A stretch of DNA of 20,788 nt from Paramicrosporidium saccamoebae KSL3 (GCA_002794465.1 MTSL01000207.1:1-20788); one strand, 5' to 3'. Positions 469 through 16,348 are shown, counted from the first letter of the stretch. Numbers and translations: made by a program. Notes: generated from the sequence alone by a model not told the origin.

Positions 469-1413
469 CTAAATCCCTGGATTCTTGAGAAATGGATGGT
501 TTTTAATCTTATCCACATCTCTATTCGCATGACACCAGCGCTGGTTGGGATCAAAATGGCCAATACCTCGGATAAAGCTATCAAACTCGGAATCTCCCGT
601 GTCCCCAGGCACCCACGATTTGACAGTTTCTTCTAGTTCATCTGTCGTTATGACCTCGCCAAACGGATGCTTCCCCGTCTTAACTTCAAGCAGTGTTATT
701 GCGAGGGCATACCAGTCCGCCCCATTATTGTAACGTCTGGATCCGTCTATTTTTTCTGGTGAGCTGTACAGTTGAGCACCGGTTCCACGAGTGGTGCCGT
801 CGGGGCTACTGACAGTCGCCGCATTGTAGTCAATTAGTTTGACTTTTCCGTCATCGGTTACCAGAATATTGGAAGGCTTAATGTCATTGTGGATGACATG
901 GTGGGTGTGTAGATAATCCAGAACATCCACCAACTGGCGAGCCACGTTTCGAAGAAAGCCGGGGGTGATGGCATCCGGGGTGCTCATCCACGTCTCGAGA
1001 GTCTTTGTGGTGTCAAAGCGCATAACCAAATTCACCGTTCCTCCCGTCTCGAGAAAGGTGCAAATACCCTCTGGAATATTTCGATGTTTGAGCACGTGGA
1101 GGGCTATATCTTCCATCCGGATCTCATTGATATCACCATCAGATACCTTTTTTATGACTACCACCATTTTTAAAGTCTCGTATTCTGCAAGGTAGACATT
1201 GGTGGAAGTAGGAAAGTGTCTGCTACGGCCAATTACGGTGCCAAGTTTAAAGTCAGCTTGGGTACATACTCGGCCACTATACTGCGGATAGAGAGGTATA
1301 TAGGTGCTAGTAACCTCTTCAAAATATTTATACTGTAATTCCAGTATTTTGGATAGGGTCCCCGAAGTAGCACCTGCTATGGTAAGCAGACAGAACATTG
1401 CCCACACGAACAT
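469..1413 (-). CDS. K1: signal-peptide-bearing Ser/Thr protein kinase (AGC/PKA-like, non-RD), 314 aa
   Basis: Hydrophobic N-terminus MFVWAMFCLLTIAGA. Motifs VVIK, MED (alphaC Glu), HNDIKPSN, DYN, SPE, DWY, QRW, NHPF. Intronless ORF. Confidence 0.9.
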   Translation of the reverse strand: MFVWAMFCLLTIAGATSGTLSKILELQYKYFEEVTSTYIPLYPQYSGRVCTQADFKLGTVIGRSRHFPTSTNVYLAEYETLKMVVVIKKVSDGDINEIRMEDIALHVLKHRNIPEGICTFLETGGTVNLVMRFDTTKTLETWMSTPDAITPGFLRNVARQLVDVLDYLHTHHVIHNDIKPSNILVTDDGKVKLIDYNAATVSSPDGTTRGTGAQLYSSPEKIDGSRRYNNGADWYALAITLLEVKTGKHPFGEVITTDELEETVKSWVPGDTGDSEFDSFIRGIGHFDPNQRWCHANRDVDKIKNHPFLKNPGI

Positions 1414-1963
1414 TACTGTATCCCCTGGTTATATTAACGTTACTTAAGTACTCGACCACGCGGACTGTAATGTTTCCGCTTACCCCTAAATCCTTTATTG
1501 GTAATTGTTTAAATTTTCAACACTAATCGGTTGCAGGCTAAGCCATTTACTACGTAATTGGCGAGGTAGGTTACGACCCTTGATTAAATGCCAAACTTTC
1601 CTCTGATACTTTTCCTCCGTTGCCTGCATCAGGGTGCGACGACAATGACCATTTGTATGCTTGCTTCAACCGATAGGGATCTTGTGCATCTATGCATGTA
1701 TGTTTTGTATTCAATCTAAGTGATGTTCCTCAGGATCAACGAGGTGCTTAATGCTCAATTATCAATACTGTCTAGAATAGGTTTCCACTTTCTGGGACTG
1801 GATTATAGACGATTGTAGGTTTGCCATAAGGCGGCACCGTGCCAACTGCAGACACTAGTCAAAACTCGAAACTGTTAAACAAATTATGGAGTTTTATTGA
1901 GTCGCCAAGACTGGCCCCTGCACCACTTTGAATAGGAGACACTTCTATTGCTATGGGCCCTGA

Positions 1964-2974
1964 TTATGGCCCAGCCTGGGTCTCTGGCTCTGTCAAATCG
2001 TGTAGATTTTTGAGAAATGGATGATTTAGAATCTTGTCCATACTTCCATTCGCACGGCTCCAACGCTGGTTGGGATCGAAATGGCCAATACCTCGGACAA
2101 AGCTATCAAAATCGGGATCGTCCGTGTCCTCGGGCACCCAGCTTGTGACAGCTTTTTTCAGTTCAGACATCTCTTTGATATCGCCAAACGGGTGTTTCCC
2201 AGTTTTAAATTCAATCAGTGTTAGTGCAAGCGCGTACCAGTCCGCCCCATTGTTGTAACGTCTAGGTTTTCTTAGCTTCTCTAGGGGGCTGTATAGTGGA
2301 GTGCCGATTGCGGTCGTAGTGCCATCGGAGTCACTAAAAGTGGCCAAGCCGTAGTCGATTAGTTTGACCCTTTCGTCCTTAGTTACCAAAATATTGGAAG
2401 GCTTGATGTCATTGTGGATGATATGGTGCTCGTGTAGATAAGCCATAACATTCACCAACTGGCGAGCCACATTTTGAAGGAAGCAGGGCTTGGTGGCTTC
2501 TGGAGCACCTATCCACATCTTGAGTGTCATATTGGTGTCATATTTCATAACCAAATTCACTGCTGAAGAGTCGTATTCTTCATTAAAAGTGCCAATACCG
2601 TCAGGGATATTTGGATGCTCGAGCAGATGGAGAATTATCTCTTCCATCCGGATAGACTTTAAATGCCCGTTGTAAATACGCTTGATGATTACATTCTCTT
2701 TTGAAGGTCCGTACTCTGCAGGAGAGACAAGGGTCGAAGACGTTTCGGTTTGAGTCATACTAATTCTCTTTCCACGTTGAAAGTCAGTTGAAACACATAC
2801 TTTGCCTTTATACTTCGGAAAGAGCGGTATATAGTAGCCTTCATAATCCCTGAGATCTCCTTCATCTTGTGGCATCAATGAGGATACGTCAAGCTCGACT
2901 GGAGGCTGCGCGATCTGCGCGGCAGCACCTAAAGCCACTAGGGTGAGCAGGCGGAATATCACTCCTACGAACAT
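1964..2974 (-). CDS. K2: signal-peptide-bearing Ser/Thr protein kinase, close paralog of K1, 336 aa
   Basis: N-terminus MFVGVIFRLLTLVALGAAA. Motifs VIIK, HNDIKPSN, DYG, GTPLY, DWY. The C-lobe is very similar to K1 (RYNNGADWYALA, KTGKHPFG, FDSF-RGIGHFDPNQRW). Gly-rich loop absent. Confidence 0.9.
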   Translation of the reverse strand: MFVGVIFRLLTLVALGAAAQIAQPPVELDVSSLMPQDEGDLRDYEGYYIPLFPKYKGKVCVSTDFQRGKRISMTQTETSSTLVSPAEYGPSKENVIIKRIYNGHLKSIRMEEIILHLLEHPNIPDGIGTFNEEYDSSAVNLVMKYDTNMTLKMWIGAPEATKPCFLQNVARQLVNVMAYLHEHHIIHNDIKPSNILVTKDERVKLIDYGLATFSDSDGTTTAIGTPLYSPLEKLRKPRRYNNGADWYALALTLIEFKTGKHPFGDIKEMSELKKAVTSWVPEDTDDPDFDSFVRGIGHFDPNQRWSRANGSMDKILNHPFLKNLHDLTEPETQAGP

Positions 2975-3149
2975 TACTGTACCCTGGCCATCCGAGCCTG
3001 ATTTAAATACTTGACCACGTGGGTAGGGGTATTTCCGCTAATCCTCAGGTCCTTACGAATATTGCAAGATGCCTATGATAAGGTGGATCGATTATATGGG
3101 CATTTATGGACAGTGAAAGCTGTGTCCTTGCGATTTTCGGATCAGAAAC

Positions 3150-3214
3150 GAACAAGTTTATTCCCTTCTCTTCTTTCCTGGCTTGGGCCGCGGCATTTTC
3201 CCCACTCCGCAACA
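3150..3214 (+). mobile_element. LTR-like repeat family 1, degenerate 3' fragment (copy E)
   Basis: 3187-3214 GCCGCGGCATTTTCCCCACTCCGCAACA matches the family 3' end CCCGTGGTATTATCCCCACTACGCGACA at 22/28, and is preceded by the family's pyrimidine-rich tract. Left boundary approximate. Confidence 0.45.
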
Positions 3215-3262
3215 CTAAGATGGGCTCCTCTACCTGATCATGGGTCACCATGAGGGCTATTG

Positions 3263-4414
3263 TCATTGAACTGTAGCAAATTGGCTCATCACGAGCAATA
3301 ATAGGCAGATGATGAGCGGTGCTATCGACCGATCGATATCCGTGTCTACGCTTGCCCCTACTCCAATGGGCAATATATTCGAGTTCAAGTAAGGATGATT
3401 CCACATTTCTTCGAGATTTCCATTGGCGCGACACCATCTCCTTGTAGGATCAGAATGTCGCAACATGCCTACGAAATCGTCTGTACTCGCGATAGGGAGC
3501 GGCGGAAATGGCTCTGCTAGGTCTCTCATAAATTCAGAAAGTGATGGAGAGTCTTCCAACGGGTGCTTTCCCGCAATTATTTCATAGAGAACCGTGCCCA
3601 ACCCATACCAATCTTCGCCGTTGTTAATAGGAAGGTCTCGGAGTTTCTCAAGAGACATGTACAACGGAGTGCCGCATACATTTGATTCTCCCCACGTTTC
3701 CCTAGTCACGTATCCAAAGTCGATTAATTTTACGGTTCCATCCTCCGCCATTAGGATATTTTTCGGTTTGATATCGTTGTGGATGAATTTCAAGTCATGG
3801 AGATATGTTAGCACACTGGCCATCTGTCGCACAAAGTGGCGCTGGTTTTCTAAACTTTTGAATGTTCCATTTTTTGCGGCGCTCTCGATCGTTGTGTCGG
3901 TCGTGAACTCCATCACAGTCCTTATTACGCCTTTCTCTACGTAGGTGCAAATTTCCCTCATAAGGTTCGGATGGTCCAAATTTAAGACTAACTCCTCTAC
4001 TCGAATTCTTTCTAGCTTACGACAACGGAAGGGGTATTTGTATTCTTTGATTGCCACTTGCCGGCCGTTGTCGTTGATGTGTTTTGCCAGATATACTGTT
4101 GAAGATGTCCCTTGTCCAATAGGGTGTAGCAACTTAAAGTCACTCGATTTGCATGGCTGACCCTTAAAGTTTGGAGAAATGGGAACATAGCTGCCATCTC
4201 CGCTACGAAGCTTTATGAATGGCGTCTCTAGCAACTCGCTGATGTCAAAGTTCCCAGAAATGAACTTTGGGGCTATAGATCCGCTTTCTGAAGCGTTGAG
4301 AGTTTCAGAAGCTCCTTGATTAAGCGGACCTTGCCCTTCCGCATTACCTGGTAAACGAGATGCCAAAATTTTCAATAACAACGTTGTACAGAAAATGAGG
4401 GTTTTACAGTGCAT
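3263..4414 (-). CDS. K3: signal-peptide-bearing Ser/Thr kinase with a C-terminal hydrophobic tail (GPI/TM-like), 383 aa
   Basis: First ATG at 4414 (the ORF track starts at a TTG at 4432) gives MHCKTLIFCTTLLLKILA. Motifs GQGTSSTVY, VAIK, HNDIKPKN, DFG, CGTPLY, DWY. C-terminus IAPLIICLLLLVMSQFATVQ. Confidence 0.9.
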   Translation of the reverse strand: MHCKTLIFCTTLLLKILASRLPGNAEGQGPLNQGASETLNASESGSIAPKFISGNFDISELLETPFIKLRSGDGSYVPISPNFKGQPCKSSDFKLLHPIGQGTSSTVYLAKHINDNGRQVAIKEYKYPFRCRKLERIRVEELVLNLDHPNLMREICTYVEKGVIRTVMEFTTDTTIESAAKNGTFKSLENQRHFVRQMASVLTYLHDLKFIHNDIKPKNILMAEDGTVKLIDFGYVTRETWGESNVCGTPLYMSLEKLRDLPINNGEDWYGLGTVLYEIIAGKHPLEDSPSLSEFMRDLAEPFPPLPIASTDDFVGMLRHSDPTRRWCRANGNLEEMWNHPYLNSNILPIGVGASVDTDIDRSIAPLIICLLLLVMSQFATVQ

Positions 4415-4798
4415 GTTAATTAAATTTCCCAATTGGTTTCTTAAGACGGAAATGCTGCTATAGTATTACTAATTAAGTAAGCCATGCGGCAGAGGACGAT
4501 CATTAATATGGGTTTACGTTGTAGCAATTTGATGTGTAGGCGTGAGCATTGATCTCTTGGAAATCCTGTACGACATTCCCATCAAGCCTCTAAACTTTAG
4601 CTTGCTGAATTAATAATACCATAGCTTAGGAAGCGTACCATTCCAAATTGTTCATATACGTGCTGTGTCATCTGATGGGTATTCTTATAGCAGCAGGTTC
4701 TTACACGCGGTGAGGGCAGGTATTACTTTAAAATCACAGATTGCTGCATAATTTTCCCAACTTGGCAGTGGTTCCGTTTTGGGAAAAGTGCTGGGCTG

Positions 4799-5152
4799 AT
4801 GAAAGTGTCGCTTTGTTGGATGCCTGCCGCGCTGGCACTGAACATTACCCAGCCCACCGGTCTCGGCAGACGACCTATCCACTGTGGAAATTATCTCCAG
4901 GTTCGCTGGAATGCCGCAAGTGTCCCCCAAGGTACTGATTGTGTGCGTCTACAGCTCGTACACAGTGGGGGAAAGACTATGATTGCAGATTGTGTGCCGG
5001 CGAGTCCGGGATTTGCGGCATTCTACCCATGGCGTTTCGCGGGACCGTTGCACGTTTTAATCGAATCGATTGACAAGGAAGGCTTGGTGCTAGACGCGAC
5101 TCTTTCTGACCAGTTCCTGCTTCCCTCTTGTATTGAATCTGGCCCCCAATGA
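4799..5152 (+). CDS. Small predicted secreted protein, 117 aa, possibly Kre9/Knh1-N-terminal-like Ig fold
   Basis: ATG start and signal-like MKVSLCWMPAALA. The mature start LNITQPT, followed by LQVRW, VRLQL, IADCVPASPG and SDQFLL, follows the beta-strand pattern of fungal Kre9/KNH-like domains. Four Cys in the mature part. The stop lies 15 bp from the convergent gene's stop. Confidence 0.55.
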   Translation: MKVSLCWMPAALALNITQPTGLGRRPIHCGNYLQVRWNAASVPQGTDCVRLQLVHSGGKTMIADCVPASPGFAAFYPWRFAGPLHVLIESIDKEGLVLDATLSDQFLLPSCIESGPQ

Positions 5153-5167
5153 AACGCTTTTTGTTTA

Positions 5168-6028
5168 TCATAATCTGGTCAATTTTCTGTCAAAGTCCAA
5201 CTCTAATATTATAGAATTTGTCGGAGGGACGTGATAAAACAGCTTGTAAGCAGGCATAAACTGATCTACAAAGCGATCAATCGTCGCTTTTGATCGACAA
5301 TGTGTACCAGCCAATCGACAAGCGTTTAATTCTTGTTCCCATCTCCAGCGGTATATTATGCTTAGGTCTCTTGTTCTCAAAAAGATATAGCCACTGAATA
5401 AGCCCCATACCTTCTGATAAGCACGCAAAGATTCATTTAATAGTGTCGCGGACTCTGTTTCGGGCGATTCGCACGGTTGAAAGCCCACCATCCAGCCTTC
5501 CACCAACAATATATCTAGCGGTAAAGAAATTACCCTAGGCGTAACCCTATCACCCAAAGTACGAGACGCAGCCCTGTCACCTAAAACACGAGGCGCAGTC
5601 CTATCGCCTAAACCACGAGACGCATTCCTGTCGCCTAAACCACGAGACACATTCCTGTCACCCAAGCCTCCTCGTGCATGTTTGTCATACGTGGGTACAA
5701 CAATTGGGTGTGCGCCATGCTTGAAGGCATTGAGATGCTCAAATAGCAATTCCACATCATGTGTGCCCGGATTGCCCCTGAATTCATACAAAGGGTTTTT
5801 GAGACGATCACGTAAGGCGAGTAGACTCTCGTGAGGTAGATAATAGTCGTCCAGGGAAACACAGTCAAGGTTCCAGCCATCACGTCGGAGTTTATCACAA
5901 GCCAGCTCGCAAAGAGTACTCTTCCCACAGCCTTGTGGCCCGCATAGCCCCACTATCACCGGTTTGGATTCGCTCCGTTCTACTATTTCCAAAATTGCCG
6001 CTACTAGCATTTGAGCATTCTCTTCCAT
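5168..6028 (-). CDS. TDA10: P-loop kinase of the TDA10 / D-glycerate 3-kinase-like family, 286 aa
   Basis: Walker A GPQGCGKST; SLDDYYL; RGNPGTHD; VPTYDK...GDR; LLVEGWMVGF; WRWEQE; FVDQFMPAY. Confidence 0.85.
   Translation of the reverse strand: MEENAQMLVAAILEIVERSESKPVIVGLCGPQGCGKSTLCELACDKLRRDGWNLDCVSLDDYYLPHESLLALRDRLKNPLYEFRGNPGTHDVELLFEHLNAFKHGAHPIVVPTYDKHARGGLGDRNVSRGLGDRNASRGLGDRTAPRVLGDRAASRTLGDRVTPRVISLPLDILLVEGWMVGFQPCESPETESATLLNESLRAYQKVWGLFSGYIFLRTRDLSIIYRWRWEQELNACRLAGTHCRSKATIDRFVDQFMPAYKLFYHVPPTNSIILELDFDRKLTRL
5534..5668. repeat. Five tandem 27-nt in-frame coding repeats (9 aa, RxLGDRxxS/P)
   Basis: Units at 5534, 5561, 5588, 5615 and 5642, e.g. ACGAGACGCATTCCTGTCGCCTAAACC. 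They translate as RGLGDRNVS / RGLGDRNAS / RGLGDRTAP / RVLGDRAAS / RTLGDRVTP. Confidence 0.95.
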
Positions 6029-6219
6029 ATCGAGGGGTCGTGGTGCTTTAATTGTTTACCACGTATGAGGCTTAAACGTTGTCAAATAAGGTATATCATC
6101 ATGCGTAATGCATCATGCATAATGCTGCTGGTTATAATGGGTCTTTGGCAGTTACCACAATGTTAAGCATTCATATTGTAAAGTTATTAAGAAGATCCTT
6201 TGTTAAAGTACCTGGTCTT

Positions 6220-6382
6220 TGTGCAGTACAACGGATTGATTAGCTGGGTATTTGGGGATAATTATCTAGTTTGGCTGAACCGAAAGAAGACTGAGATTTG
6301 CATCTGTACGGTTATAAGATTAGTAGTGCGTTGGATTATTAGTGAACGAATTCTCTTTTTGCTTCTTCCTCACTATGTGACA
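6220..6382 (+). mobile_element. LTR-like repeat family 1, internally deleted copy (copy F)
   Basis: Starts TGTG and ends CACTATGTGACA. 6235-6274 matches the reverse complement of copy A at 34/40. GTTGGATTATTAGTGAAC matches GTTGGATTAATAGTGAAC of copy A. Confidence 0.7.
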
Positions 6383-6481
6383 CGTAGATGTAACATTTTA
6401 CAACTTTTACTTCATTTATAACGTCAGTCCTATTGCAAAGGATCACTGACATGCTTTCAAGTGCACCTATTCTAGTTCATT

Positions 6482-7453
6482 CTAGTCGAGTTCCAAAGGT
6501 GGATCTCGGAGATATGGATGGTTTCTGATTGCATCAGAATGCCCGTTACACTGGGCCCAGCGCAGCTCCCAATTTGGGTGGGCAATCTGTTGTATAAAGT
6601 CATTCAGTGCACGGTTTTTAAGACGTGGCAGACCCCGCTTGGCGGCCACTTCAATATCGACCAACTTTGCGATACTTCGAAACGGATTATGTCCGGTAAA
6701 CATTTCATAAAGCATCACACCAAATGAATACCAATCTACGGCATTAAAGTATCGTGTGGCACGGAATTTTTCCGGTGCAAGATAGATGGTTGTGCCAGAA
6801 CGACGATTTGCCCCGTGCTGATCATAGGCCGCCAAATCAAAATCAATTAGGAACACATGGCCGTCCGGACGTACTAGCACATTTTCTGGCTTAATGTCGT
6901 TGTGAATGATCCCTTGTTCGTGCAGATAAATCAATACGCCTACCAATTGTCTTGCTACACTGCGGAGATTGATGGGAAAGGGTGGCCGTACGGATAGCCA
7001 TTCTCGTAGACTCTCCCCTGCAATGTATTCCATCACCACTCCCACACTGTCATCTAATCCAAGGAATGTACAGATTCCCTTGGGAAGATTCGGATGATCT
7101 AGCTTATTGAGCACCACTTCCTCCAACTGCACTTTTTGTGGAAAGCTTTTGTATGCCGCTTTGGTAAAATACTTTACTGCCACCAGCTGACCAGTGTCCG
7201 CCGTCAACGCTCTAAAGACACTCCCAGCGACCCGTGTGTCGATCTGAAATTGGTGAGGGTTGCAGGACACGTTGTGGCAGGTGTTGAAGATGGGCTGGTA
7301 AGTATCCTTGTCGTCCAAAAGACCTTTGGCGGGGAAGCTGAGAAGTTCGGACACGCTTGCATCAGCAGTAGGACGGGGGATGGTCTGAAGGATAACAACA
7401 TTAAAGAATTGAATTCCCAGACATAAAAGGGCCGCGGGACTGAGGTGATGCAT
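6482..7453 (-). CDS. K4: signal-peptide-bearing Ser/Thr kinase (non-RD, DFD), 323 aa
   Basis: ATG at 7453 gives MHHLSPAALLCLGIQFFNVVIL. Motifs VAVK, LEE, HNDIKPEN, DFD, GTTIYLAPE, DWY, NHPYL. Shortened Gly loop. Confidence 0.9.
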   Translation of the reverse strand: MHHLSPAALLCLGIQFFNVVILQTIPRPTADASVSELLSFPAKGLLDDKDTYQPIFNTCHNVSCNPHQFQIDTRVAGSVFRALTADTGQLVAVKYFTKAAYKSFPQKVQLEEVVLNKLDHPNLPKGICTFLGLDDSVGVVMEYIAGESLREWLSVRPPFPINLRSVARQLVGVLIYLHEQGIIHNDIKPENVLVRPDGHVFLIDFDLAAYDQHGANRRSGTTIYLAPEKFRATRYFNAVDWYSFGVMLYEMFTGHNPFRSIAKLVDIEVAAKRGLPRLKNRALNDFIQQIAHPNWELRWAQCNGHSDAIRNHPYLRDPPLELD

Positions 7454-7869: not shown

Positions 7870-9528
7870 ATGAACATTTTGTCGGCAACTGCTCGGGTCG
7901 CTTTGTGTCTTTCTTTTCTATCGTCTTGCAACGTCGCCAGAGCTAGCAATGACACGGAAGCCTTACGGAAAATTGTTTCGGAAGAATTGGGAATCTTGGA
8001 ACAATTGCCTGAAAATGGTAACCTTGACAGCAATCCCGTAGAGTACAACGAGGAAATGCTCATGCAGCAACTACTTCAAATGTACACATTACGGGAGCAT
8101 TTCTGTACAATGAATGAGCTCTCGCGAGAAAAGCTGGCAGCCCGACTTGTTGCCATGCCTTTGAGCGGCTCTGGACTGGAAGCGTGGCGGAATTGGGCCT
8201 GTTTTGATCTGCTGGGTAGAAATTTACCAAGGGGTGGAAGTTGCACCGTCTTGTATGCCAGTGATCTTGTGGAGATGCTGCTCTCGGCATGCAGAGGACA
8301 CGAATGGGCTATTACAGCCGTGGAGACTATTTTCCAGGATTCTCAAGCTCTTGGAATGTATAGAATCCAGTTCGATCCACCCATTAATGCTTTGGTCGAC
8401 CTGCCAACCTCGACACAGCATGCAATTGCTGCCAGTGGGGGATCCATTCTGCCGCTCCCTACCCTCCAGAATTGGTGTCTTAACCATGTCAGAGAAAATG
8501 GTGATGCAAGTCTGATGATGACCTTGTTACAGGTGCACACTAATGCTCCAAAGCTCCCTATTGAATCGACCGAATTCTGTAATCAGCTGATTCGAAAAGT
8601 GGCCATGCTACCTATGACTAACTATCGGCCGGATTGGGCACACTGCAAGTCTTTTGTCAGATATTACAAGACACTTGTCCATATAATACCAAATGAACTG
8701 AGGAATTTTACGTTTCATGACTCGCAAATGGCCCTCGATCTTGATCCGTCTATCCATGCAATTTTGTCTAATTGCCATCTCCTCGCTGTACTGAGTCCTG
8801 CGCTGCCCGCACCGCACTTTGAGCCGGGCACTCTGATAATCCGAAAAGACGGATTAGACGAGCTGGAAATTTTGGAATTTTACCTTTCTATGACAGATTT
8901 ATTTGGCATCAACACCAAATCATCTGCAGACACTATCCTCCGTGAAAATCACATTATGCACTGGGTTAATCAGTTGTACTCTAGCAACTCTAATGACGCT
9001 ACAGACTTTGAAAGAGTTGTAAGGATTCTGCTCACTCGAAACTCGCACCTAGTGTTGAACGCCTTTATACTATCATCTCAAAGAATCTCAGCTGAATTGA
9101 TATCTAGCTTCATGGTTGAGAGACTTTGCAGAGATCCAGAGGTACAACCACTGGCCCTTTCCCAATTGCTTTATTATAACAAGCTCCAGCGGATTTCATC
9201 TTCCGGGCTTTCTGGCCGCACGTTGTTGGTTTTGGATATTTTCAACAGCGTCACCGACTCTGGTTGTGTTCGTCCCTGTGGTCTTCCTGGTGAAGTGCAG
9301 TCTATTCCACTTCCTTTGATCCACATATCCAAGAGTGATGCCCTCTTTGCCCAGCGTGTGTATTTGCTTCTGAAATTTGGCATCCCGTTGGAAAGATCGC
9401 TACTGTTGGGATTTCTAAAGTCTCCCCGTACGTCAAGACCTGAACGCCGTGTCGATCATATAATCAGGCAACATTGCACCCTCCAAGGACTCTTTAGTGT
9501 GGTGAAGCACAAGATGGAAAACTATTGA
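7870..9528 (+). CDS. Predicted secreted hypothetical protein, 552 aa, no recognised domain
   Basis: Long intronless ORF. Signal-like MNILSATARVALCLSFLSSCNVARA with an A-x-A cleavage site. Leu-rich, helical-looking remainder. Confidence 0.8.
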   Translation: MNILSATARVALCLSFLSSCNVARASNDTEALRKIVSEELGILEQLPENGNLDSNPVEYNEEMLMQQLLQMYTLREHFCTMNELSREKLAARLVAMPLSGSGLEAWRNWACFDLLGRNLPRGGSCTVLYASDLVEMLLSACRGHEWAITAVETIFQDSQALGMYRIQFDPPINALVDLPTSTQHAIAASGGSILPLPTLQNWCLNHVRENGDASLMMTLLQVHTNAPKLPIESTEFCNQLIRKVAMLPMTNYRPDWAHCKSFVRYYKTLVHIIPNELRNFTFHDSQMALDLDPSIHAILSNCHLLAVLSPALPAPHFEPGTLIIRKDGLDELEILEFYLSMTDLFGINTKSSADTILRENHIMHWVNQLYSSNSNDATDFERVVRILLTRNSHLVLNAFILSSQRISAELISSFMVERLCRDPEVQPLALSQLLYYNKLQRISSSGLSGRTLLVLDIFNSVTDSGCVRPCGLPGEVQSIPLPLIHISKSDALFAQRVYLLLKFGIPLERSLLLGFLKSPRTSRPERRVDHIIRQHCTLQGLFSVVKHKMENY

Positions 9529-9560
9529 AAGAGCGAATTATTTAGTATGACGGATCATGT

Positions 9561-9759: not shown

Positions 9760-9760
9760 C

Positions 9761-11095
9761 TTACAATGTCAGCTTTAGCGAACTGAGATAGGCATAGCCA
9801 GATGCCACCCCTCCCTCCATCAGATTGGCGGGCTTTGTCCTCACTAAATATCCAGCCTGGCTATTACGCAGCACTTTGCCCCCTCTTGCCATGATCACGC
9901 CGTAAATTCCCAACTCGGAAACACCTGGTTCCCTCCAAATCTTGTCTCGTAGCAAAATGGACGGCTCAGAGGGGGCGTCAATCTTTTCCATTATAATATG
10001 TGCGGTACGTCGGACAGGGTCAGCGTCGGACAGAAGTTTGACCAATTCCGAACCGAAAATGTTGTGTCCCCCGCCCTCACGTTGCGGCTTGGCAATCCAG
10101 CGATCAGGTTCTGACAAGACACGTTCCGCATTATGCCGACCTGACTCATTATCTTCGAGATGCAATAGCTCCATGAATGTGCTTGCCAGCAAATCTCCAT
10201 CAGTTCTCATGAATTTGGACAATACCGTTGGACAGGCAAGTTCTTGCTGCACCTTTTTCAGTCCAGCCAAATGCATGGCAATATCAGGAATCTTTACAGC
10301 ACTACTCCTCTCCACCATCAATCTGGCAGTCCAGCAATGGCTGTGGACATAGTCGGACGGGCTGTATCCGGATCTGTAATACACTAGTCCCACAACCACT
10401 CCGTTCAACATCATGACGCCATCTTGAGTGGTGCAGTGTTGACCAACTTCCTCCAGTGTCAAGCGTACCATTGAGATACCACTTTGCTTAATTATTCCTT
10501 CTTGGTCATGCAGATTACCTTCTTCGGGCTGCACCACCATAATGGCCATTGCCTCTGTAATCCCATATTCATTCTTGAACAACTCTAATCCATCTCTAAT
10601 TGCCACTGCAATGTCCCCTCCGGCTGTATTTGCAGGAATGTCGAAAGAGTTCTCTCGATGCAGATCACACGTCAATTGCGAAAGATGTGAGAATGAGGCC
10701 GCAATTGTATTTAGCTCGACCTGCTTCAGTTCAGCCTGTTCCAGTTTCCCGTGGAGCATGTAGTCGGACCGGAAAAGGCCTAGCCGCAATTTCTGGGTTG
10801 GGCACTCTTTCCAAATCTTGCAGAGTCGCTCAACAAAGTCATCGCGAATTGCGTTACAAATGCCCTCCAGCCAGACATGTTCGTTGACAATTTCAAGGAC
10901 AAGTCTATTAAAGTATGGCTGGATTGCCACTGCTTTTTCGAATGCAAAGCGTGGCCAGCTGGCTGGCCGCAATGATATGGGTGCTGGCATCGAGCTCCAA
11001 CTGCCATTTACGTTACGTCGCATTGTCAAGCCGTGTTCAAATGCCCATGCACGGGCAGCATCCTCGTCAATTCCTTCGTCAAGGTGCACATGCAT
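9761..11095 (-). CDS. GSH2: Glutathione synthetase, eukaryotic type, 444 aa
   Basis: Motifs FRSDYM, KQVELNTIAASF, YYRSGY, HLAGLKKVQQEL, KPQREGGGHN, SELGIYG, GYLVRTK, EGGVASG. Confidence 0.97.
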   Translation of the reverse strand: MHVHLDEGIDEDAARAWAFEHGLTMRRNVNGSWSSMPAPISLRPASWPRFAFEKAVAIQPYFNRLVLEIVNEHVWLEGICNAIRDDFVERLCKIWKECPTQKLRLGLFRSDYMLHGKLEQAELKQVELNTIAASFSHLSQLTCDLHRENSFDIPANTAGGDIAVAIRDGLELFKNEYGITEAMAIMVVQPEEGNLHDQEGIIKQSGISMVRLTLEEVGQHCTTQDGVMMLNGVVVGLVYYRSGYSPSDYVHSHCWTARLMVERSSAVKIPDIAMHLAGLKKVQQELACPTVLSKFMRTDGDLLASTFMELLHLEDNESGRHNAERVLSEPDRWIAKPQREGGGHNIFGSELVKLLSDADPVRRTAHIIMEKIDAPSEPSILLRDKIWREPGVSELGIYGVIMARGGKVLRNSQAGYLVRTKPANLMEGGVASGYAYLSSLKLTL

Positions 11096-11244
11096 ATTTC
11101 ATTTAACCCGTTTTTAATGAGAGTATTGACGTATGTCGGGCTAGTGCGTCCAATCACAGGGGCCATGCTATACGGATGAGGCAACACGTTATAGATGGCC
11201 ACTACTACAACAGGGTCTGTTGATGAGCGAATTACTTTCAGGAG

Positions 11245-11387
11245 GAGAAGGGAATTTCTTCAGTCAATCCAACGACCCATTTATAGTCTCACAAATAACA
11301 TTATCCTTCATCGATTGTTCTGATTATCCCTTCTCCAAACTAAGGAACTATCTTCAAATACCCAACTAATCAGTCTTCTACGTCACA
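11245..11387 (-). mobile_element. LTR-like repeat family 1 (copy B), 3'-truncated, nested in a family 2 element
   Basis: About 90% identical to 16782-16949 apart from a 25-nt indel. The minus strand starts TGTGACGTAGAAGACTGATTAG. Confidence 0.85.
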
Positions 11388-11503
11388 CCTTTATAGGTGG
11401 CCATTCTTAGGACCACCAAACTGAGCGGTGGGACCGTTATCTGGGTCGGACTCGCCAATGACAGGCGGGTGCCGTTCAACAGGATCTTTACTTAAACCTC
11501 ACA
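11388..11503 (-). mobile_element. Repeat family 2, 5' part, interrupted by family 1 copy B
   Basis: 87/115 ungapped identity to 98-212. Similarity resumes on the far side of copy B (about 11190-11240, minus: TTCGCTCATCAACAGACCC vs TTCACACATCAAGCAGACCC). Confidence 0.8.
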
Positions 11504-11564
11504 CTATATATGCCCCTTCATCTCTACTAGCATTCTTAATCTTACGGCCAATGACAATATGCAT

Positions 11565-12528
11565 CTATTCCTTTGACTTGTCGGTCTGAAAAAATGAATG
11601 TGCCAGCATATCATCAATGTTATTGTTCTGGAATGACCACCGCTTCTCCGGATCCAACTCACATAAGTGATCAACTAAATCCTCTGCCGCCTTGTCTGCC
11701 AGCTCCTCCCGCCCTTTCAATGTCTTCCAGAGTGCCAATTTTCCCATGCGGGAAGCATAGACCACTAATCATGTAGAGACACACCCCCAATGAAAACCAA
11801 TCGACACGCCCATCATATACCTCACCCTTGAGCATCTCGGGAGCTCTACGTCCATCCGTTCCACATATATCCCTGGCGCCACCTGGAGCATAAGCGGCCT
11901 GATCGTAGTCGATCAGATAAACATCACAGTCGTTGCTCATAAGAACGTTCGTTGACTTGATATCTCGGTGTATAATTCCCATTCCATGTAAATATTCCAT
12001 CGCGCTAATAAGGCTTTTCATAACATGTCTCTGCAACGCCTTCTGGTTAAAATTAAAGGTTTTAGAGAGCCAAAATCCGAGCGAATGGCCCTTTACGTAC
12101 TGCATTACTATCCCAACCGATCCCTTAAATACATACGTGCAGTGCAATTTCGGAATGTTTGGGTGCGATGACATTCCGAGGATTCGTTCTTCGGTGCGAA
12201 CATCTTCCGCCCAAAGCTCTCGTTGCGCCTCCGGGTTTCTGCACTTGATCGCCACCATTTTTCGAAGCGGGATGTAGATTGCAGACCAAACCTGTCCGCT
12301 ACGTCCCTCGCCAAGCTTCTTTAGCAGTTTAAAGTGCGGAGCCTGGCACACATTGTTGCCCATGTCCATCCGCGGATAGATTGGCTGGTAGTTTCCTTCT
12401 GGTGAGAGGAGCCGAGCGCCTGGAAGGGCAAAAATTTCAGCCGTCGTCATGGAAGCATAATCGGGTGGATTCCATTCGCTACTGCATTGTACCGCAAGTA
12501 AAGGCAGAAAGAACGCTAAATTGCGCAT
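11565..12528 (-). pseudogene. K5: signal-peptide-bearing Ser/Thr kinase with a frameshift near 11697-11712 (pseudogene, truncated allele or assembly error)
   Basis: ATG at 12528 gives MRNLAFFLPLLAVQC. Motifs GEGRSGQVW, VAIK, HRDIKSTN, DYD, CGT, APE, DWF. The main frame stops at 11671, while the family C-terminus (DKAAEDLVDHL...KRW...HSFF) is in another frame ending at 11565. Confidence 0.85.
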
Positions 12529-12606
12529 ATTCACGAGGTTTAAATAAATACCCTTTAATGGAATCCCTAGTCGATGAGTGTACTATGTGTCACAGCCTGT
12601 ATCAAG

Positions 12607-13740
12607 CTACGCCTTGATGCTTTTATGATTTCTTATTTGTTCCAATTGTAAATAGCCCCACCGTTTCTCTACGTTGGGCACTGTCAAATGTTGAATCAGC
12701 TCGTTTTCGTGGGTGTCTCCCGTTTCCGGAATGCCCTCTTTAAAAGCCTCGGCCAGGTCATGATGCACATCGGAGCTATACCTGAGGTGATTGAAAGGAT
12801 GGTATCTATTGAGAAGCTCAAAAAAGATGATCCCTACGGCAAACCAGTCAGAGGCCTCAGCGGAAGGAGCACCATCCCATACCTCGGGGGAAATGTAAAA
12901 GGGCGATCCCACGCGATCCTTGCGCTGACCGTTGATCGTGGCAAAGCCAAAATCAATTAAATAGAGCACATTGTCTTTGGACAACATGAGATTTTCCAGT
13001 TTAATGTCTCGGTGCCAAATATTCTGACTGTGCAGATACCCCAACACATCCACAAGCTGTCGCATGATGGATTTGCGCAAGTCGTCATCAATCTCTTGTT
13101 TGATCGTTGCGGCTAATGTAACACCATCGATGAATGGCATAACTAAGGCTATATAGTTTGAATGTGGATACACGCAGTGCAGGTTGGCTATCGCCGAGTG
13201 ATGGAGTCTACTCAGGAACACCATTTCGGTCTGAATTTCCTGAATCTTTGATTTGTCTACATACTTGATGGCAACCACCGTCTCGTCCTTATCAAGGGCA
13301 CGATAGACAGCACTAGTGCCGCTTCCCGCACGCCCCAACCGTTTAAAGCGGTCCTTGTCGCACATCTGGCCCTTCCAGCTTGTATAGGCGGGTTGATTTG
13401 GCTTGCCCGGCGTTCCCGTCAGAGAGAGCAGTTCCTCGGTCGTTAGGGCCTGTAGAGCTTCAGCAATCGTCATTTCGGGTGGTTCTGCAAGCTCCGCTTT
13501 GTCACTGGTAGCCTCAATAGATGTCGAAATCGCTGGTTTGGTACTAACTGAATCATTTTTGGCTTCATTATCAAGTGCATCTTGGTTGGAAAGCAGGGTA
13601 GTGAGGTTCCCGCTGCTGACGGTACGTTCAGTCTGTTTCTCAGTTGGAACGTTTGATAGATTTATCAAAGAAAGTTTCGAGGCGTAACCTCCGCCATATA
13701 TACTGACAACCAAGATGAACCCAAGTGTGGTGAGTAGCAT
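12607..13740 (-). CDS. K6: signal-peptide-bearing Ser/Thr kinase with a long S/T-rich spacer, 377 aa
   Basis: MLLTTLGFILVVSIYGGGYA; sequons NLS, NLT and NDS in the spacer. Motifs VAIK, HRDIKLEN, DFG, GSPFYISPE, DWF. Confidence 0.92.
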   Translation of the reverse strand: MLLTTLGFILVVSIYGGGYASKLSLINLSNVPTEKQTERTVSSGNLTTLLSNQDALDNEAKNDSVSTKPAISTSIEATSDKAELAEPPEMTIAEALQALTTEELLSLTGTPGKPNQPAYTSWKGQMCDKDRFKRLGRAGSGTSAVYRALDKDETVVAIKYVDKSKIQEIQTEMVFLSRLHHSAIANLHCVYPHSNYIALVMPFIDGVTLAATIKQEIDDDLRKSIMRQLVDVLGYLHSQNIWHRDIKLENLMLSKDNVLYLIDFGFATINGQRKDRVGSPFYISPEVWDGAPSAEASDWFAVGIIFFELLNRYHPFNHLRYSSDVHHDLAEAFKEGIPETGDTHENELIQHLTVPNVEKRWGYLQLEQIRNHKSIKA

Positions 13741-13926
13741 GTGGCCAAAAGTAATCCCTGGCTATCACGCCATGCCGACTGAATAATTATAAGCCTGTGT
13801 GGGCGATCGGTTTTGGTAGCGTTGATTACTAGCAGAACTGAATGCATAGTACTGGTCTGGATAGCATAAGAAAAATTATGCATGCCAGAAAGAGTCTCTT
13901 TATATCGAACCTCTTGCTATCGATCA

Positions 13927-15057
13927 TTAATTAATGGCTCTATGGTCTCTGATGGTTTCCAATGTCGCATCACCCCATCGCTGCTCCACATCCAATAGTG
14001 TCAAACCTTGGATTAGCTCATCTTCGTCATTGTGTCCTGTGAGTGGAATGATACCCTTCGTGCAGGCCTTTTTAAGTTCACGACTTGGGTCAAAGGCGTT
14101 TTCGACCCATTGAAAAGGAGGAGAGCCCATTAATAGTTCGTAAAAGAGGATTCCCACGGCATACCAGTCGGAAGCGGCACTGTGAGTATTGCTCTTCCAA
14201 ACCTCCGGGGCCATGTAGGTCTCTGTCCCCACAAAACTGCTGTCCAGGCCGTTGATCGTGGCGAGGCCAAAATCAATTAAATAGAGCTTATTGTCCTCGG
14301 ACAACATGAGATTTTCCAGTTTAATGTCTCGGTGCCAGACTTCCTGACTGTGAAGGTATCTCAGCACATCTACTAGCTGCCGCATGATGGATTTGCGCAA
14401 ACCACTGTCGATCCCTTGACTAAGTTTTGCGAGCAGATTGACACCTTTGATGAACGGCATAACTAGAGCTACATTATCATGGTACGGAAATACACAGTGC
14501 AAGTTGATTATCCCCGGATGATTGAGTCTACTTAGAAGCACATCTTCGGCTCGGATTGCCTGTAATTCATCGTTTTCCACAAGCTTGATTGCAACTGTTA
14601 CGTTATCTTCGGCAAGGGCATAGTACACTGTACCTGTAGCGCCATTACCAATCTGCCTCCAGTTGCTGAATCGTCCTTTATGGCAGATCCGCCCGTTCCA
14701 GTGGGTGTAGATGGGTTGGTAGATTCCGCTAGTCTTGAAAGTTTCCGTCTTGGAAAGCAAGTCGACAGTGGTTCTTTCCCGCAGAATTTCAGCCTTTGTC
14801 TTTTTCAGTTCAGAGAGCTGCAACCGTACCATACGCGCTTTCATGGCCAAACTGCCCTCTGTTCCGTTGCTGGGTATGTTAGCAGAAAGAGCAGCGTCTT
14901 TAGCCCGTGTGCTAGCTTGTGTGTCAAATTCTGTCCTGTGACTCTGTAAGTTTTCAAGCTCGACCGTCTCTGGTTGGATTGTTTTTGCAGCCAAACCACT
15001 TTTCGTGTTTGCGCAGACAATAATCAGCAATACGGGAGTGAGCAGATCTAGCAACAT
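13927..15057 (-). CDS. K7: signal-peptide-bearing Ser/Thr kinase, close paralog of K6, 376 aa
   Basis: ATG at 15057 gives MLLDLLTPVLLIIVCA (an alternative in-frame ATG lies at 15084). Motifs GNGATGTVY, VAIK, HRDIKLEN, DFG, GTETYMAPE, DWY. Confidence 0.92.
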   Translation of the reverse strand: MLLDLLTPVLLIIVCANTKSGLAAKTIQPETVELENLQSHRTEFDTQASTRAKDAALSANIPSNGTEGSLAMKARMVRLQLSELKKTKAEILRERTTVDLLSKTETFKTSGIYQPIYTHWNGRICHKGRFSNWRQIGNGATGTVYYALAEDNVTVAIKLVENDELQAIRAEDVLLSRLNHPGIINLHCVFPYHDNVALVMPFIKGVNLLAKLSQGIDSGLRKSIMRQLVDVLRYLHSQEVWHRDIKLENLMLSEDNKLYLIDFGLATINGLDSSFVGTETYMAPEVWKSNTHSAASDWYAVGILFYELLMGSPPFQWVENAFDPSRELKKACTKGIIPLTGHNDEDELIQGLTLLDVEQRWGDATLETIRDHRAIN

Positions 15058-15093
15058 GGTAATTATACAATCCCTGGTTGCCATCAAAAGAGA

Positions 15094-15225
15094 CTGCTAA
15101 ACAGCATTCGCTTATTGTTGGCGAGTCCAGCTCAGTTATCGGACCCACAGTCCAGTTTGACTATATTACGAACGGCTACCTATGTCATAGACTTTAATAA
15201 ATGTAATTCACGCATCAACAGAGAC
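15094..15225 (+). mobile_element. Repeat family 2, internal copy between K7 and K8
   Basis: 15094-15183 matches 119-208 at 70/90 ungapped, and similarity continues through TTCACGCATCAACAGA. Weak similarity may extend to about 15310. Confidence 0.75.
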
Positions 15226-15316
15226 TTTACTGTCTCCTCACGCGGACCATTGCCCCAGCATCCCGTTTTTAGGTCAAACAAGGCGCCATGGAATTTACAC
15301 TCTACCCGAGGGTGAT

Positions 15317-16348
15317 TTATTGCGAATCGGATCGAGATTTACGGGCGCGTCTCTCCCTGACTTTGTTGATGCGCAAATGGCGAGTACGTTCCCCATCCAA
15401 AAAGTAGGGATGGGTGATAATGTCTTTCCAATTTCCATTGGCCACAGACCAACGCAGCCGCATCTGTACATGTGACAGCTTACCCACTAAATCATCCACC
15501 AGCCGGTCGCCTGTCCTGGGACAGCCCCGCGCTGCCCGCTCCAACATTCCATCCCGATCTCTGATCCGATCGTACGGATGCACTCCCATGACCATCTCAT
15601 ATAGCACCAATCCTGCCGCATACCAATCAATGCCGTTGTTGTAGGGTTCGCGACGGAGCAGTTCTGGCGCCATGTTCATTAGTGTGCCACATGGAGTACT
15701 CAACATGGCCTCAGTCATAAAGGCGTGGTCATAGTCCACAAGGTACAAGTGGCCCGCTTCCGTCACCATCATGTTCTCTGGTTTGACGTCGCGGTGCATC
15801 ACATTGTTTGCGTGCAGATAGCCCAACACGTTGACAAGCTGTACCATCACCCTCCTAGTTAGACGGGGAAGTAGTCGCTGTTCGTAAATCCAATCAAACA
15901 AATCTCGGGCTTCGGCCAATGTCATGGCCAGCACTGTTTGGCCGTTTTCCTGGAACGAGCAGTACAGTTTCGGAATGGACACATGGTCCAGTCGAGCCAG
16001 GAAGACTTCTTCCGCTCGAATCCGTTTGTACGCTATCGGTCCCTTATCATGCATCACTTTGAGCGCCACAAACATTCCCGAGTCGTGTCGGGCCCGCCAC
16101 ACTTGTCCCCGCGCGCCGCTGCCCAACTTTCGCAGCTTTTGGAAATGCTCCGGACGACAAGTCCGGTTTCGGTACTCGGTAAAGATGAGCTGGTAGTTCC
16201 CTTGTGCATCGCTAAAAGTGTTTTCTGTTGTCAACAGGGCTGTTGTAGAAAGGTCCCGGAGCAGCACACTTTGGCGCTCTCGATCCTTTCCCCACGACAA
16301 GCACGAGGCCGTGGAGCACAGCAATATTAGCCAGAGTCTACTCAACAT
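15317..16348 (-). CDS. K8: signal-peptide-bearing Ser/Thr kinase with a basic NLS-like C-terminal tail, 343 aa
   Basis: ATG at 16348 gives MLSRLWLILLCSTASC. Motifs GSGARGQVW, VALK, HRDVKPEN, DYD, TPCGT, APE, DWY. Tail RTRHLRINKVRERRARKSR. Confidence 0.92.
   Translation of the reverse strand: MLSRLWLILLCSTASCLSWGKDRERQSVLLRDLSTTALLTTENTFSDAQGNYQLIFTEYRNRTCRPEHFQKLRKLGSGARGQVWRARHDSGMFVALKVMHDKGPIAYKRIRAEEVFLARLDHVSIPKLYCSFQENGQTVLAMTLAEARDLFDWIYEQRLLPRLTRRVMVQLVNVLGYLHANNVMHRDVKPENMMVTEAGHLYLVDYDHAFMTEAMLSTPCGTLMNMAPELLRREPYNNGIDWYAAGLVLYEMVMGVHPYDRIRDRDGMLERAARGCPRTGDRLVDDLVGKLSHVQMRLRWSVANGNWKDIITHPYFLDGERTRHLRINKVRERRARKSRSDSQ

Follow-up and report, generated by a model that had tools for sequence, protein, structure and literature searches.

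The window analysed here is the whole of contig MTSL01000207.1 (20,788 nucleotides) from Paramicrosporidium saccamoebae (Rozellomycota). Its minus strand carries eight paralogous, co-oriented open reading frames, K1 to K8 (Table 1), each of which scores above the cutoff of the Pfam Pkinase family (PF00069), with E-values from 2.6e-35 to 1.9e-49. An earlier note on this DNA had described eight co-oriented, intronless kinase genes in two blocks of four. The eight genes, their shared orientation and their lack of introns all stand, and short introns are present in the neighbouring genes, but K5 is frameshifted (the N-terminal 285 codons lie in one frame and the remaining C-lobe in another) and the first block is not contiguous, being split by a D-glycerate-3-kinase homologue and a small ORF between K3 and K4. 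All the proposed starts are ATG codons, and each is the first of its ORF apart from that of K7; K7 alone has a further ATG, 9 codons upstream (15084). K2 is 56% identical to K1, and K7 is 48% identical to K6.

Table 1. Kinase genes and selected segments of the array (positions in the window)
Feature	Position	Strand	Description and evidence
K1 kinase	469..1413	(-)	314 aa; clade A (HND, non-RD); Pfam Pkinase 2.6e-35, alignment, N-terminal hydrophobic peak
K2 kinase	1964..2974	(-)	336 aa; clade A; Pfam Pkinase, alignment
K3 kinase	3263..4414	(-)	383 aa; clade A; Pfam Pkinase, alignment
K3 C-terminal hydrophobic tail, last ~20 residues	3266..3325	(-)	
K4 kinase	6482..7453	(-)	323 aa; clade A; shortened G-loop; Pfam Pkinase, AF2 model
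K5 kinase	11565..12528	(-)	clade B (HRD); one frameshift; Pfam Pkinase
K6 kinase	12607..13740	(-)	377 aa; clade B; spacer ~95 residues; Pfam Pkinase, alignment
K7 kinase	13927..15057	(-)	376 aa; clade B; Pfam Pkinase
K8 kinase	15317..16348	(-)	343 aa; clade B; canonical G-loop; Pfam Pkinase, AF2 model
K8 pre-kinase extension, residues ~31-68, example of the family module	16145..16258	(-)	pLDDT >=94 throughout
K8 C-terminal basic Arg/Lys-rich tail, ~27 residues	15320..15400	(-)	predicted helical; kept in both orthologues

The GenBank models are wrong for seven of the eight genes, K6 being the sole correct one. K7 is fused to K8, splicing shortens the products of two other genes, and the remaining three models disagree with the plain ORFs; one model carries the name "AGC protein kinase, variant". 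The genome paper and its supplements make no mention of these kinase genes, and the family has probably been overlooked because of this mis-modelling.

The alignment shows no variation among the eight proteins in the beta3 Lys, alphaC Glu, H-x-D-x-K-x-x-N catalytic loop, DFG Asp, APE Glu or DW motif, as expected from the claim that every copy keeps its catalytic residues. The Lys, Asp, Lys, Asn and DFG Asp also stay unchanged in 27 family members. With these columns in place and PF00069 matches above the curated cutoff, all eight belong to the eukaryotic protein kinase (ePK) superfamily. Other parts of the active site vary by copy. K1 to K4 are non-RD kinases with an HND sequence, while K5 to K8 form an RD clade. 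Only K5, K7 and K8 have a canonical glycine-rich loop; the loops of K1 (which carries an insertion), K2 and K4 are clearly degenerate, so that these last three copies may bind ATP unusually or poorly. The DFG glycine is substituted in four copies (DYN in K1), and the activation-segment residue before the conserved Gly-Thr is Ser or Thr in some copies and acidic or basic in others.

The core is closest to those of the AGC group. In a search of the PDB with the family profile, the best 60 matches are all AGC kinases, led by yeast PKA (4.4e-53) and including the RSK2 N-terminal domain, PKA C-alpha and Akt, and Foldseek with the K8 model returned PKA, PDK1 and Aurora. The AGC C-terminal tail is absent because the proteins finish where the kinase core does: Pkinase_C (PF00433) has no match at E<=0.01 in the eight proteins, the F-x-x-F/Y motif does not occur in the 1-40 residues after the core, and the family-profile alignment breaks off at the point in the chain from which the PKA tail would follow. 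The profile search, Foldseek and the tail-motif search together bear out the earlier description of a PKA/AGC-like core without its C-terminal tail.

Every one of the eight proteins has a hydrophobic peak that begins within residues 2-9, with a Kyte-Doolittle 9-residue mean of 2.2-3.1. Among 342 unrelated kinases, 4.1% pass a looser test that applies the same score but allows a start within the first 17 residues. The hydrophobic N-terminus is also kept in 27 of 27 family members with an intact N-terminus, despite only about 30% shared identity, and this conservation, with the peak in all eight, upholds the proposal of a signal-peptide-like start in every gene. The uncharged runs are mostly 9-21 residues long, a signal-peptide rather than a transmembrane length, and small residues stand at -3/-1 after most of the hydrophobic segments. 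None of the eight proteins has a KDEL-like ending. Set against a classical signal peptide, with its n-region, an h-region of 7-15 residues and small residues at -3/-1, the hydrophobicity, the (-3,-1) rule and the conservation point to putative signal-peptide cleavage and secretion. K4 and its orthologue may carry an uncleaved signal anchor, because their uncharged N-terminal run is longer and has no clean -3/-1 site. At the other end of the chain, the hydrophobic tail of K3, which is missing from its orthologue P0150, might serve as a membrane anchor or as a GPI-signal-like segment, while the basic tail of K8 resembles a nuclear-localisation or nucleic-acid-binding patch.

A variable, low-complexity spacer is followed, before the kinase domain, by a conserved extension of about 35 residues that is found family-wide and is confidently folded in AF2 models. 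Its signature is an aromatic-x-Pro-aliphatic-aromatic motif, then a conserved Cys, then a Phe four residues on; the motif sits 38-115 residues from the N-terminus. Of the 26 members whose sequence spans this region, 25 carry the signature. It is absent from all of 80 generic kinase loci and is so far confined to Paramicrosporidium-like sequences. In the models of K8 (pLDDT 93, pTM 0.85) and K4 (pLDDT 88), the N-terminal 20-30 residues have a pLDDT of about 60-69 and the extension one of at least 90. A second conserved Cys, in the N-lobe, is paired with the extension Cys in every family member but K2, and the only cysteines of K6 are these two. The corresponding positions are not Cys in aligned yeast PKA or RSK2.

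Clustering at 50% identity sorts the further relatives into about 17 groups, and every one comes from P. saccamoebae or its uncultured relatives in JGI/Logan metagenomes. This agrees with the suggestion of a lineage-specific family in a compact-genome, fungal-like parasite, and P. saccamoebae is indeed an intracellular parasite, related to fungi and with a compact genome. Synteny at a conserved locus likewise bears out expansion by tandem duplication. A distant relative (GSS 47% identical) has the order PAF-AH, heme lyase, PEX11, two family kinases, ABC transporter and GSS, and the window has four kinases where this syntenic locus has two. A close relative keeps the orders K3-K2-like, K6-K5-GSS and GSS-K4-GLYK-K3, with an intact K5 and at least three K2-like copies. 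The comparison shows that an old locus expanded from two copies to four, and that each lineage duplicated one subfamily on its own.

Comparison covered every paralogue except K7, and each of those compared has an orthologue in a related species. K4 is the most conserved copy (orthologue P0001, 83% amino acid identity, dN/dS 0.13). Identities for other copies are given by K8 (orthologues P0270 and P0271, 72-74%), K5 (orthologue P0162, unbroken and 318 aa long, 62.5%, dN/dS 0.29) and K3 (orthologue in a related metagenome species, 52.6%, dN/dS 0.35). K2, K3 and K5 have dN/dS values of 0.29-0.35 against 0.09-0.13 for GSS, and over the compared pairs, K5 included, the range is 0.13-0.51, all below 1. 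Most copies evolve 2-4 times faster than the adjacent housekeeping genes while still under purifying selection; with dS near saturation, every compared pair is net purifying and gives no signal of positive selection. K4 is as conserved as its adjoining housekeeping gene, so a parasite-internal role fits this copy at least as well as that of an arms-race effector.

The best sequence and structural matches are to the AGC kinases PKA/Tpk1, RSK (N-terminal domain), Akt and PDK1, and the family's activation segment and end-of-core motif are similar to theirs. AGC kinases are cytosolic. The present family differs from them in lacking the C-tail and hydrophobic motif, in having HND in half of its copies, and in adding a putative signal peptide, a spacer and a folded extension with a Cys pair. 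Foldseek ranks Aurora B, A and C near the top of its matches to the K8 model, and Aurora kinases also have AGC-like cores without a cis C-tail, the N-lobe pocket being otherwise occupied. Their activation, however, depends on partner proteins acting in trans; they serve the cell cycle in the nucleus or cytosol and have no signal peptide, and profile scores rank PKA, RSK and Akt above Aurora.

Toxoplasma ROPK proteins combine a signal peptide, an N-terminal extension and a kinase domain; they are polymorphic, have expanded in tandem and are secreted into the host. Reinke et al. (2017) also refer to this family. The present family is like them in outline, but the kinase lineages are unrelated, and there are no clear pseudokinases among K1 to K8, all of which keep the catalytic residues. 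Membership of the ROPK family was rejected, with PF14531 scoring 15.7-24.1 bits, below its 25-bit cutoff and beneath far stronger Pkinase matches; we know of no rhoptry organelle in P. saccamoebae. The FIKK kinases of Plasmodium are exported and lineage-expanded and tolerate non-canonical glycine loops, which K1, K2 and K4 share with them, although the core here is AGC-like. FIKK membership was also rejected, as neither the F-I-K-K motif nor a PEXEL-like R-x-L-x-E/Q/D motif occurs in any of the eight. WNG1 and Fam20C/VLK kinases act after entry into the secretory pathway, some without a normal glycine loop. The present core, by contrast, is a conventional AGC-like ePK, and none of the eight proteins has a Pfam match to the WNG1 or Fam20C/VLK families.

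The Microsporidia, the sister lineage of intracellular parasites, also have signal-peptide-bearing or host-exposed kinases, which are set beside the present family by description only. In Anncaliia algerae, signal-peptide-positive Pkinase proteins are encoded next to one another, and proximity labelling identified a Pkinase protein of Nematocida as host-exposed (Reinke et al., 2017, PMC5423893). No named microsporidian protein came up in the searches with the family proteins or profile. Large microsporidian families with targeting signals have been defined by at least 10 paralogues per genome and at least 2-fold enrichment of signal peptides or transmembrane segments (Reinke et al., 2017, PMC5423893); here, eight copies lie on this one contig, with heuristic signal-peptide-like N-termini in 8/8 against 4.1% of control kinases. 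The apicomplexan ROP and FIKK kinases and the microsporidian signal-peptide kinases are precedents for the present AGC-derived family, which is itself undescribed.

The presence of eight PKA-like kinases with signal-peptide-like starts in one array is confirmed, and their first reading as a secreted effector-kinase family is partly supported. Judged from sequence, they represent an undescribed family of probably secreted, host-facing kinases, and our preferred explanation, which we consider rather likely, is that lineage-restricted, AGC-derived serine/threonine kinases were re-targeted to the secretory pathway, are tail-less and extension-bearing, and face the host after release. Each protein consists of four parts: a putative signal peptide, a variable spacer, the folded extension of about 35 residues, and a catalytically complete core ending where the AGC C-tail would start. 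The signal peptide would carry the kinase into the ER and, because there is no ER-retention signal, the kinase is proposed to be released at the parasite surface or, for K3, displayed there by its hydrophobic tail. Because the parasite grows inside the nucleus of its host amoeba, that surface would face the host nucleoplasm, where ATP is present, and the kinases could there phosphorylate host proteins or proteins of the parasite-host interface. The extension, possibly pinned by a disulfide, would replace the missing AGC tail in stabilising the N-lobe. Through tandem duplication at the old syntenic locus the family has expanded, and it has divided into the non-RD (K1-K4) and RD (K5-K8) clades; the non-RD copies may have no need for an activation-loop Thr phosphorylated by PDK1. 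A bolder version, which we put forward tentatively and think doubtful as a whole, is that an AGC lineage was rebuilt for extracellular life: the otherwise necessary C-tail was lost, a disulfide-pinned extension with its aromatic motif docks on the N-lobe, and constitutively active, PDK1-independent paralogues, one with an NLS-like tail, are secreted into the host nucleoplasm to phosphorylate host nuclear proteins.

Toxoplasma WNG1 and the metazoan Fam20C-type kinases act on their own secretory cargo, and the array could similarly encode secretory-pathway kinases that work, in the lumen or at the interface, on proteins of the parasite itself, whether secreted or belonging to its spore wall, polar filament or surface. 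The same signal-peptide features would be equally expected of such enzymes; the housekeeping-like conservation of K4 also fits, and orthologues for all comparable paralogues at an old locus suggest stable, specialised functions and not rapid turnover. We nevertheless judge this explanation unlikely, if worth serious attention, given that the proteins have no ER or Golgi retention signal and that K8 ends in a conserved basic tail reminiscent of a patch for nuclear or nucleic-acid targeting. The faster evolution of most copies than of their neighbours, with a copy number that varies by lineage, also argues against it, fast evolution and copy-number differences having been reported for the host-exposed proteins of Microsporidia.

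Ordinary signalling by membrane-tethered kinases, held by an uncleaved reverse signal anchor with the kinase domain on the cytosolic side of the parasite membrane, is quite improbable. K1, K4, K6 and K7 do lack a positive charge before the hydrophobic core and have Lys/Arg after it, and the uncharged runs of K1 and K6 reach 21 residues (K4 is shorter by a stricter count), but the hydrophobic cores are mostly 9-16 residues, below bilayer-span length, and many relatives show a positive n-region, a hydrophobic core and then small residues. The family-wide Cys pair, at positions that are not Cys in the yeast PKA and RSK2 sequences, also fits an oxidising compartment. As for a decaying or artefactual array, in which pseudogenising duplicates or miscalled genes have hydrophobic starts by chance, the frameshift in K5, the three degenerate glycine loops and the seven GenBank models that differ from plain ORFs would be expected. 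This explanation is largely refuted and, in our view, very improbable indeed: seven ORFs are unbroken and keep every catalytic residue, dN/dS lies well below 1 even for K5, the starts and lengths recur in orthologues from independent metagenomes, and a comparable N-terminal peak is rare in the control kinases.

Secretion of host-facing kinases, as preferred here, would bear on a genus intermediate between the free-living fungi and the extremely reduced Microsporidia; to our knowledge, almost nothing is known of how Paramicrosporidium manipulates the host nucleus. A tail-less AGC core with a folded N-terminal module in place of the tail is a natural experiment in AGC N-lobe stabilisation. The family would also add an independent case, after the apicomplexan ROPK and FIKK kinases, of parasite kinases turned into exported ones, and, if the proposal is true, Rozellomycota would gain its first described effector-kinase system. 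These conserved, tandemly expanded kinases with putative signal peptides, hidden until now by the public annotation, are concrete candidates for action at the interface between the parasite and the host nucleus.

Each of the eight minus-strand open reading frames (ORFs) proposed in the earlier note as kinase genes scores above the Pfam Pkinase threshold, with E-values from 2.6e-35 to 1.9e-49, on a 20,788-bp window that represents one entire P. saccamoebae contig (MTSL01000207.1 of assembly GCA_002794465.1). All eight proposed starts are ATG codons, and an upstream in-frame ATG is present only in K7, nine codons before the proposed start. The proteins can be aligned end to end, and the catalytic residues expected of them are retained in 8/8 copies (β3 Lys, αC Glu, H-x-D-x-K-x-x-N, DFG Asp, APE Glu, and the DW motif), while a Cys and a Phe ahead of the kinase domain are also invariant. 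The genes are intronless as described, though the nearby PEX11 and PAF-acetylhydrolase-like (PAF-AH) genes carry putative short GT..AG introns. Two elements of the original description hold only in part. The ORF family is present, but K5 is broken by one frameshift, and its remaining C-lobe is readable in a different frame. Since both frames overlap inside conserved C-lobe sequence, an intron is ruled out and the break is either a frameshift or an assembly error. Similarly, the eight genes are there, but block I of the two blocks of four is not contiguous, with a pair of unrelated genes separating K3 from K4.

Features of the window, with amino acid identity to orthologues
Feature	Window position	Strand	Orthologue identity	Remarks
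K1	469-1413	-
K2	1964-2974	-	52%
K3	3263-4414	-	53%
D-glycerate-3-kinase homologue (GLYK)	5168-6028	-	75%	PDB 7xpc, 1.4e-30
K4	6482-7453	-	83%
Orphan 552-aa ORF	7870-9528	+		Signal-peptide-like N-terminus; between the two kinase blocks
Glutathione synthetase (GSS)			83%	Neighbour gene, for comparison, as is GLYK
K5	11565-12528	-	62.5%
K6	12607-13740	-	~75%	Identity from a fragment only
K7	13927-15057	-
K8	15317-16348	-	72-74%
K8 Arg/Lys-rich C-terminal helix	15320-15400	-		Conserved in the C-termini of P0270 and P0271, metagenome orthologues of K8
PEX11	17204-17937	+		In two frames
PAF-AH	18776-20130	+		In two frames

A closer look at the kinase motifs shows differences between copies. Only K5, K7, and K8 have a canonical glycine loop; the third Gly is replaced by Ser in K3 and K6, K1 and K2 carry insertions, and the loop of K4 is shortened. 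The DFG glycine is substituted in K1, K4, K5, and K8. The catalytic loop reads HND (non-RD) in K1-K4 and HRD in K5-K8, and a neighbour-joining tree separates an HND clade (K1-K4 and relatives) from an HRD clade (K5-K8 and relatives), coinciding with the two physical gene blocks. The N-lobes of K6 and K7 (window 12607-15057) match Pfam DUF5898 below threshold, at 23.5-23.8 bits where the cutoff is 28.9. Upstream of the kinases, no k-mer exceeds shuffled controls as a shared promoter motif. A CCAGGG(A/T)-like element, which is not significant, lies ∼10-60 nt 5′ of the ATG in four to five of the eight genes (K1, K2, K5, K6, and K7; the K5 copy is CTAGGGAT) and may be explained by paralogy.

The earlier description of the family as PKA/AGC-like with a missing tail is borne out. 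Single kinase sequences searched against the PDB match AGC kinases best (yeast PKA 5.6e-27, Akt2 3.3e-27), with PAK close behind, and among the best 60 matches of a family profile every one is an AGC kinase: yeast PKA Tpk1 comes first (4.4e-53), ahead of the RSK2 N-terminal kinase, PKA Cα, and Akt. AlphaFold2 models of K8 (pLDDT 93, pTM 0.85) and K4 (pLDDT 88, pTM 0.84) are confident, and Foldseek with the K8 model retrieves Aurora B, PKA, and PDK1. The profile-to-PKA alignment stops at the final core helix, after which the proteins continue for only 1-40 residues, and neither an F-x-x-F motif nor Pkinase_C is found in the eight proteins. On this tail criterion, the eight kinases fall outside AGC by strict definition. 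The ROP kinases of Toxoplasma and the FIKK kinases of Plasmodium are the closest functional analogues, although the eight kinases tested as members of neither family.

All eight copies start with a hydrophobic segment, with a Kyte-Doolittle 9-residue peak of 2.2-3.1 beginning at residues 2-9. The uncharged runs are mostly 10-21 residues long, and small residues occupy positions -3/-1 after the core in most copies. Among unrelated kinases, 14 of 342 (4.1%) reach the same hydrophobicity score beginning in the first 17 residues, a looser criterion than that met by the eight, and because paralogues are not independent the contrast describes conservation and not a probability. Mitochondrial presequences were rejected, as the N-termini are hydrophobic and neither amphipathic nor basic. 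Next comes a spacer that differs between copies in length and composition, and 38-115 residues from the N-terminus begins a conserved pre-kinase module of ∼35 residues, consisting of aromatic-x-Pro-aliphatic-aromatic, a Cys 5-9 residues on, and a Phe four further, leading into β1. In both models, pLDDT is ≥90 over this module and ∼60-69 over the first 20-30 residues, as would be expected if a removable signal peptide preceded an extension that is integral to the fold. A second N-lobe Cys accompanies the pre-kinase Cys in 26/27 family members, and the two conserved cysteines are the only ones in K6, while yeast PKA and RSK2 have other residues at the aligned positions. A structural disulfide between the pair is an attractive reading of this conservation. 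At the other end of the proteins, none of the eight has a KDEL-like ending. K3 carries a ∼20-residue hydrophobic C-terminal tail that is absent from its orthologue, and the basic helix of K8 is similar to a patch for nuclear localisation or nucleic-acid binding.

When 1.84 billion cluster representatives are searched exhaustively with a profile, ∼17 single-domain family representatives appear at 266-416 bits, compared to ∼180 bits for PKA with a comparable profile; the remaining top matches lack the family signature and are multi-kinase proteins. The family representatives all derive from P. saccamoebae or from JGI/Logan metagenome assemblies. Every relative with an intact N-terminus opens with a signal-peptide-like segment, and many of these are textbook examples, with a basic n-region, hydrophobic core, and small residues. 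Three word-indexed searches were also run: K4 alone finds three close relatives among the matches listed, those listed for a 27-sequence alignment are dominated by generic kinases, and the pre-kinase region matches only two K8 orthologues. Among the matches listed in these searches, no named relative outside P. saccamoebae appears. A scan of metagenome DNA with the clade-A alignment brings up 80 loci, all of them generic kinases that lack the family signature and serve as a specificity control only.

Two relatives allow the history of the array to be followed. On an 83-kb contig (L003) of a distant relative (GSS 47% and heme lyase 59% identical to the window), the order is PAF-AH, heme lyase, PEX11, two family kinases, ABC transporter, GSS, with two kinases at the syntenic position where the window has four. 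The ABC transporter is full-length (L003 11331-15137, plus strand), and the window lacks it, having two extra kinases instead. In the close relative (GSS 83% identical), the order GSS-K4-GLYK-small ORF-K3 is kept, as is K6-K5-GSS, and K5 is intact. Synteny thereby dates the array, and the expansion took place at the syntenic locus. Turnover is fastest in the K2-like subfamily, marked by its insertion-bearing glycine loop. On one contig of the close relative (L089 382-4118), three or more K2-like genes lie in tandem, and two of these share 66% identity, at the place where P. saccamoebae has K2 and K1. The tree pairs K1 with K2, and P0004 with P0269, metagenome K2-like copies of which P0269 lies on the close relative's contig. 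Synonymous divergence is 0.59-0.65 within each lineage, lower than the ∼1.0-1.1 between species for these genes, which implies that the subfamily was duplicated or homogenised independently in each lineage.

The other eukaryotic genes on the contig include GLYK, GSS, PEX11, cytochrome c heme lyase, PAF-AH, and one orphan, and GC content is even throughout (0.43-0.52). Horizontal transfer was rejected given this uniform composition. The orphan ORF has no Pfam or PDB match and is missing from the ∼280-bp GSS-K4 interval of the close relative's contig L001, indicating an insertion in the window or a loss in L001. GLYK contains, inside the enzyme, about six tandem copies of a ∼7-residue Gly/Asp/Arg-rich repeat; its L001 orthologue is 41 residues shorter. 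The frame splits in PEX11 and PAF-AH look like very short GT..AG introns; the one in PEX11 would be ∼29 nt, and the longer one in PAF-AH has a CTAAC-like branch site.

GenBank models much of this contig differently. Exact-sequence look-up shows that only K6 is identical to the plain ORF. Between window positions 7453 and 16348, a single 682-aa product joins K8 to K7, the model of K5 splices over the frameshift to leave 256 aa, and that of K4, a 203-aa “variant”, omits the central part of the kinase domain. The models of GSS (397 aa) and the orphan (510 aa) fall short of their own ORFs, and PEX11 and PAF-AH are each entered as two separate genes. Such mis-modelling probably explains why the family went unnoticed. 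P. saccamoebae belongs to the Rozellomycota and is a parasite growing inside Saccamoeba nuclei (PMC5701793). Neither the genome paper nor any of its five supplements has information on these kinases, expression included, and the paper does not mention secreted proteins or effectors (PMC5701793). We found no literature that describes secreted kinases from Rozellomycota. The precedent closest to P. saccamoebae in phylogeny comes from Microsporidia, where expanded kinase families of two species are enriched in targeting signals, Anncaliia algerae has adjoining signal-peptide-positive Pkinase genes, and a Nematocida Pkinase protein is experimentally host-exposed (Reinke et al., 2017; PMC5423893).

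Comparison with orthologues bears on whether the array is maintained. The dN/dS ratios are 0.29-0.35 for K2, K3, and K5, 0.13 for K4, and 0.09-0.13 for GSS, figures that are rough since dS is near saturation. All are below 1, and no positive selection is demonstrated by orthologue dN/dS. The family is functional, with most copies evolving faster than their neighbours. The ratio of K5 does not look like that of an old pseudogene, so its frameshift is either recent or an assembly error; for the array as a whole, decay or artefact is very improbable.

Secretory-pathway targeting of the eight kinases is probable, and a cytosolic, membrane-tethered topology is unlikely. Where the kinases would act is less settled. 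The main rival holds that they act on secretory cargo or spore structures of the parasite itself, and the conservation of K4, which resembles that of a housekeeping gene, speaks for it; we consider it a real but distinctly less likely alternative. The whole package, including host-facing action, is the best-supported reading and is favoured with some reserve. According to this host-facing reading, AGC-derived kinases would enter the secretory pathway and reach the parasite surface, to be released or displayed there; in this parasite the surface faces the host nucleoplasm. The N-terminal extension would stabilise the kinase in place of the lost AGC tail. The concept of such kinases is already known; the novelty lies in the family as such, in its apparent AGC origin with tail loss, in its conserved module at the N-terminus and its pair of Cys residues, and in its occurrence in Rozellomycota.
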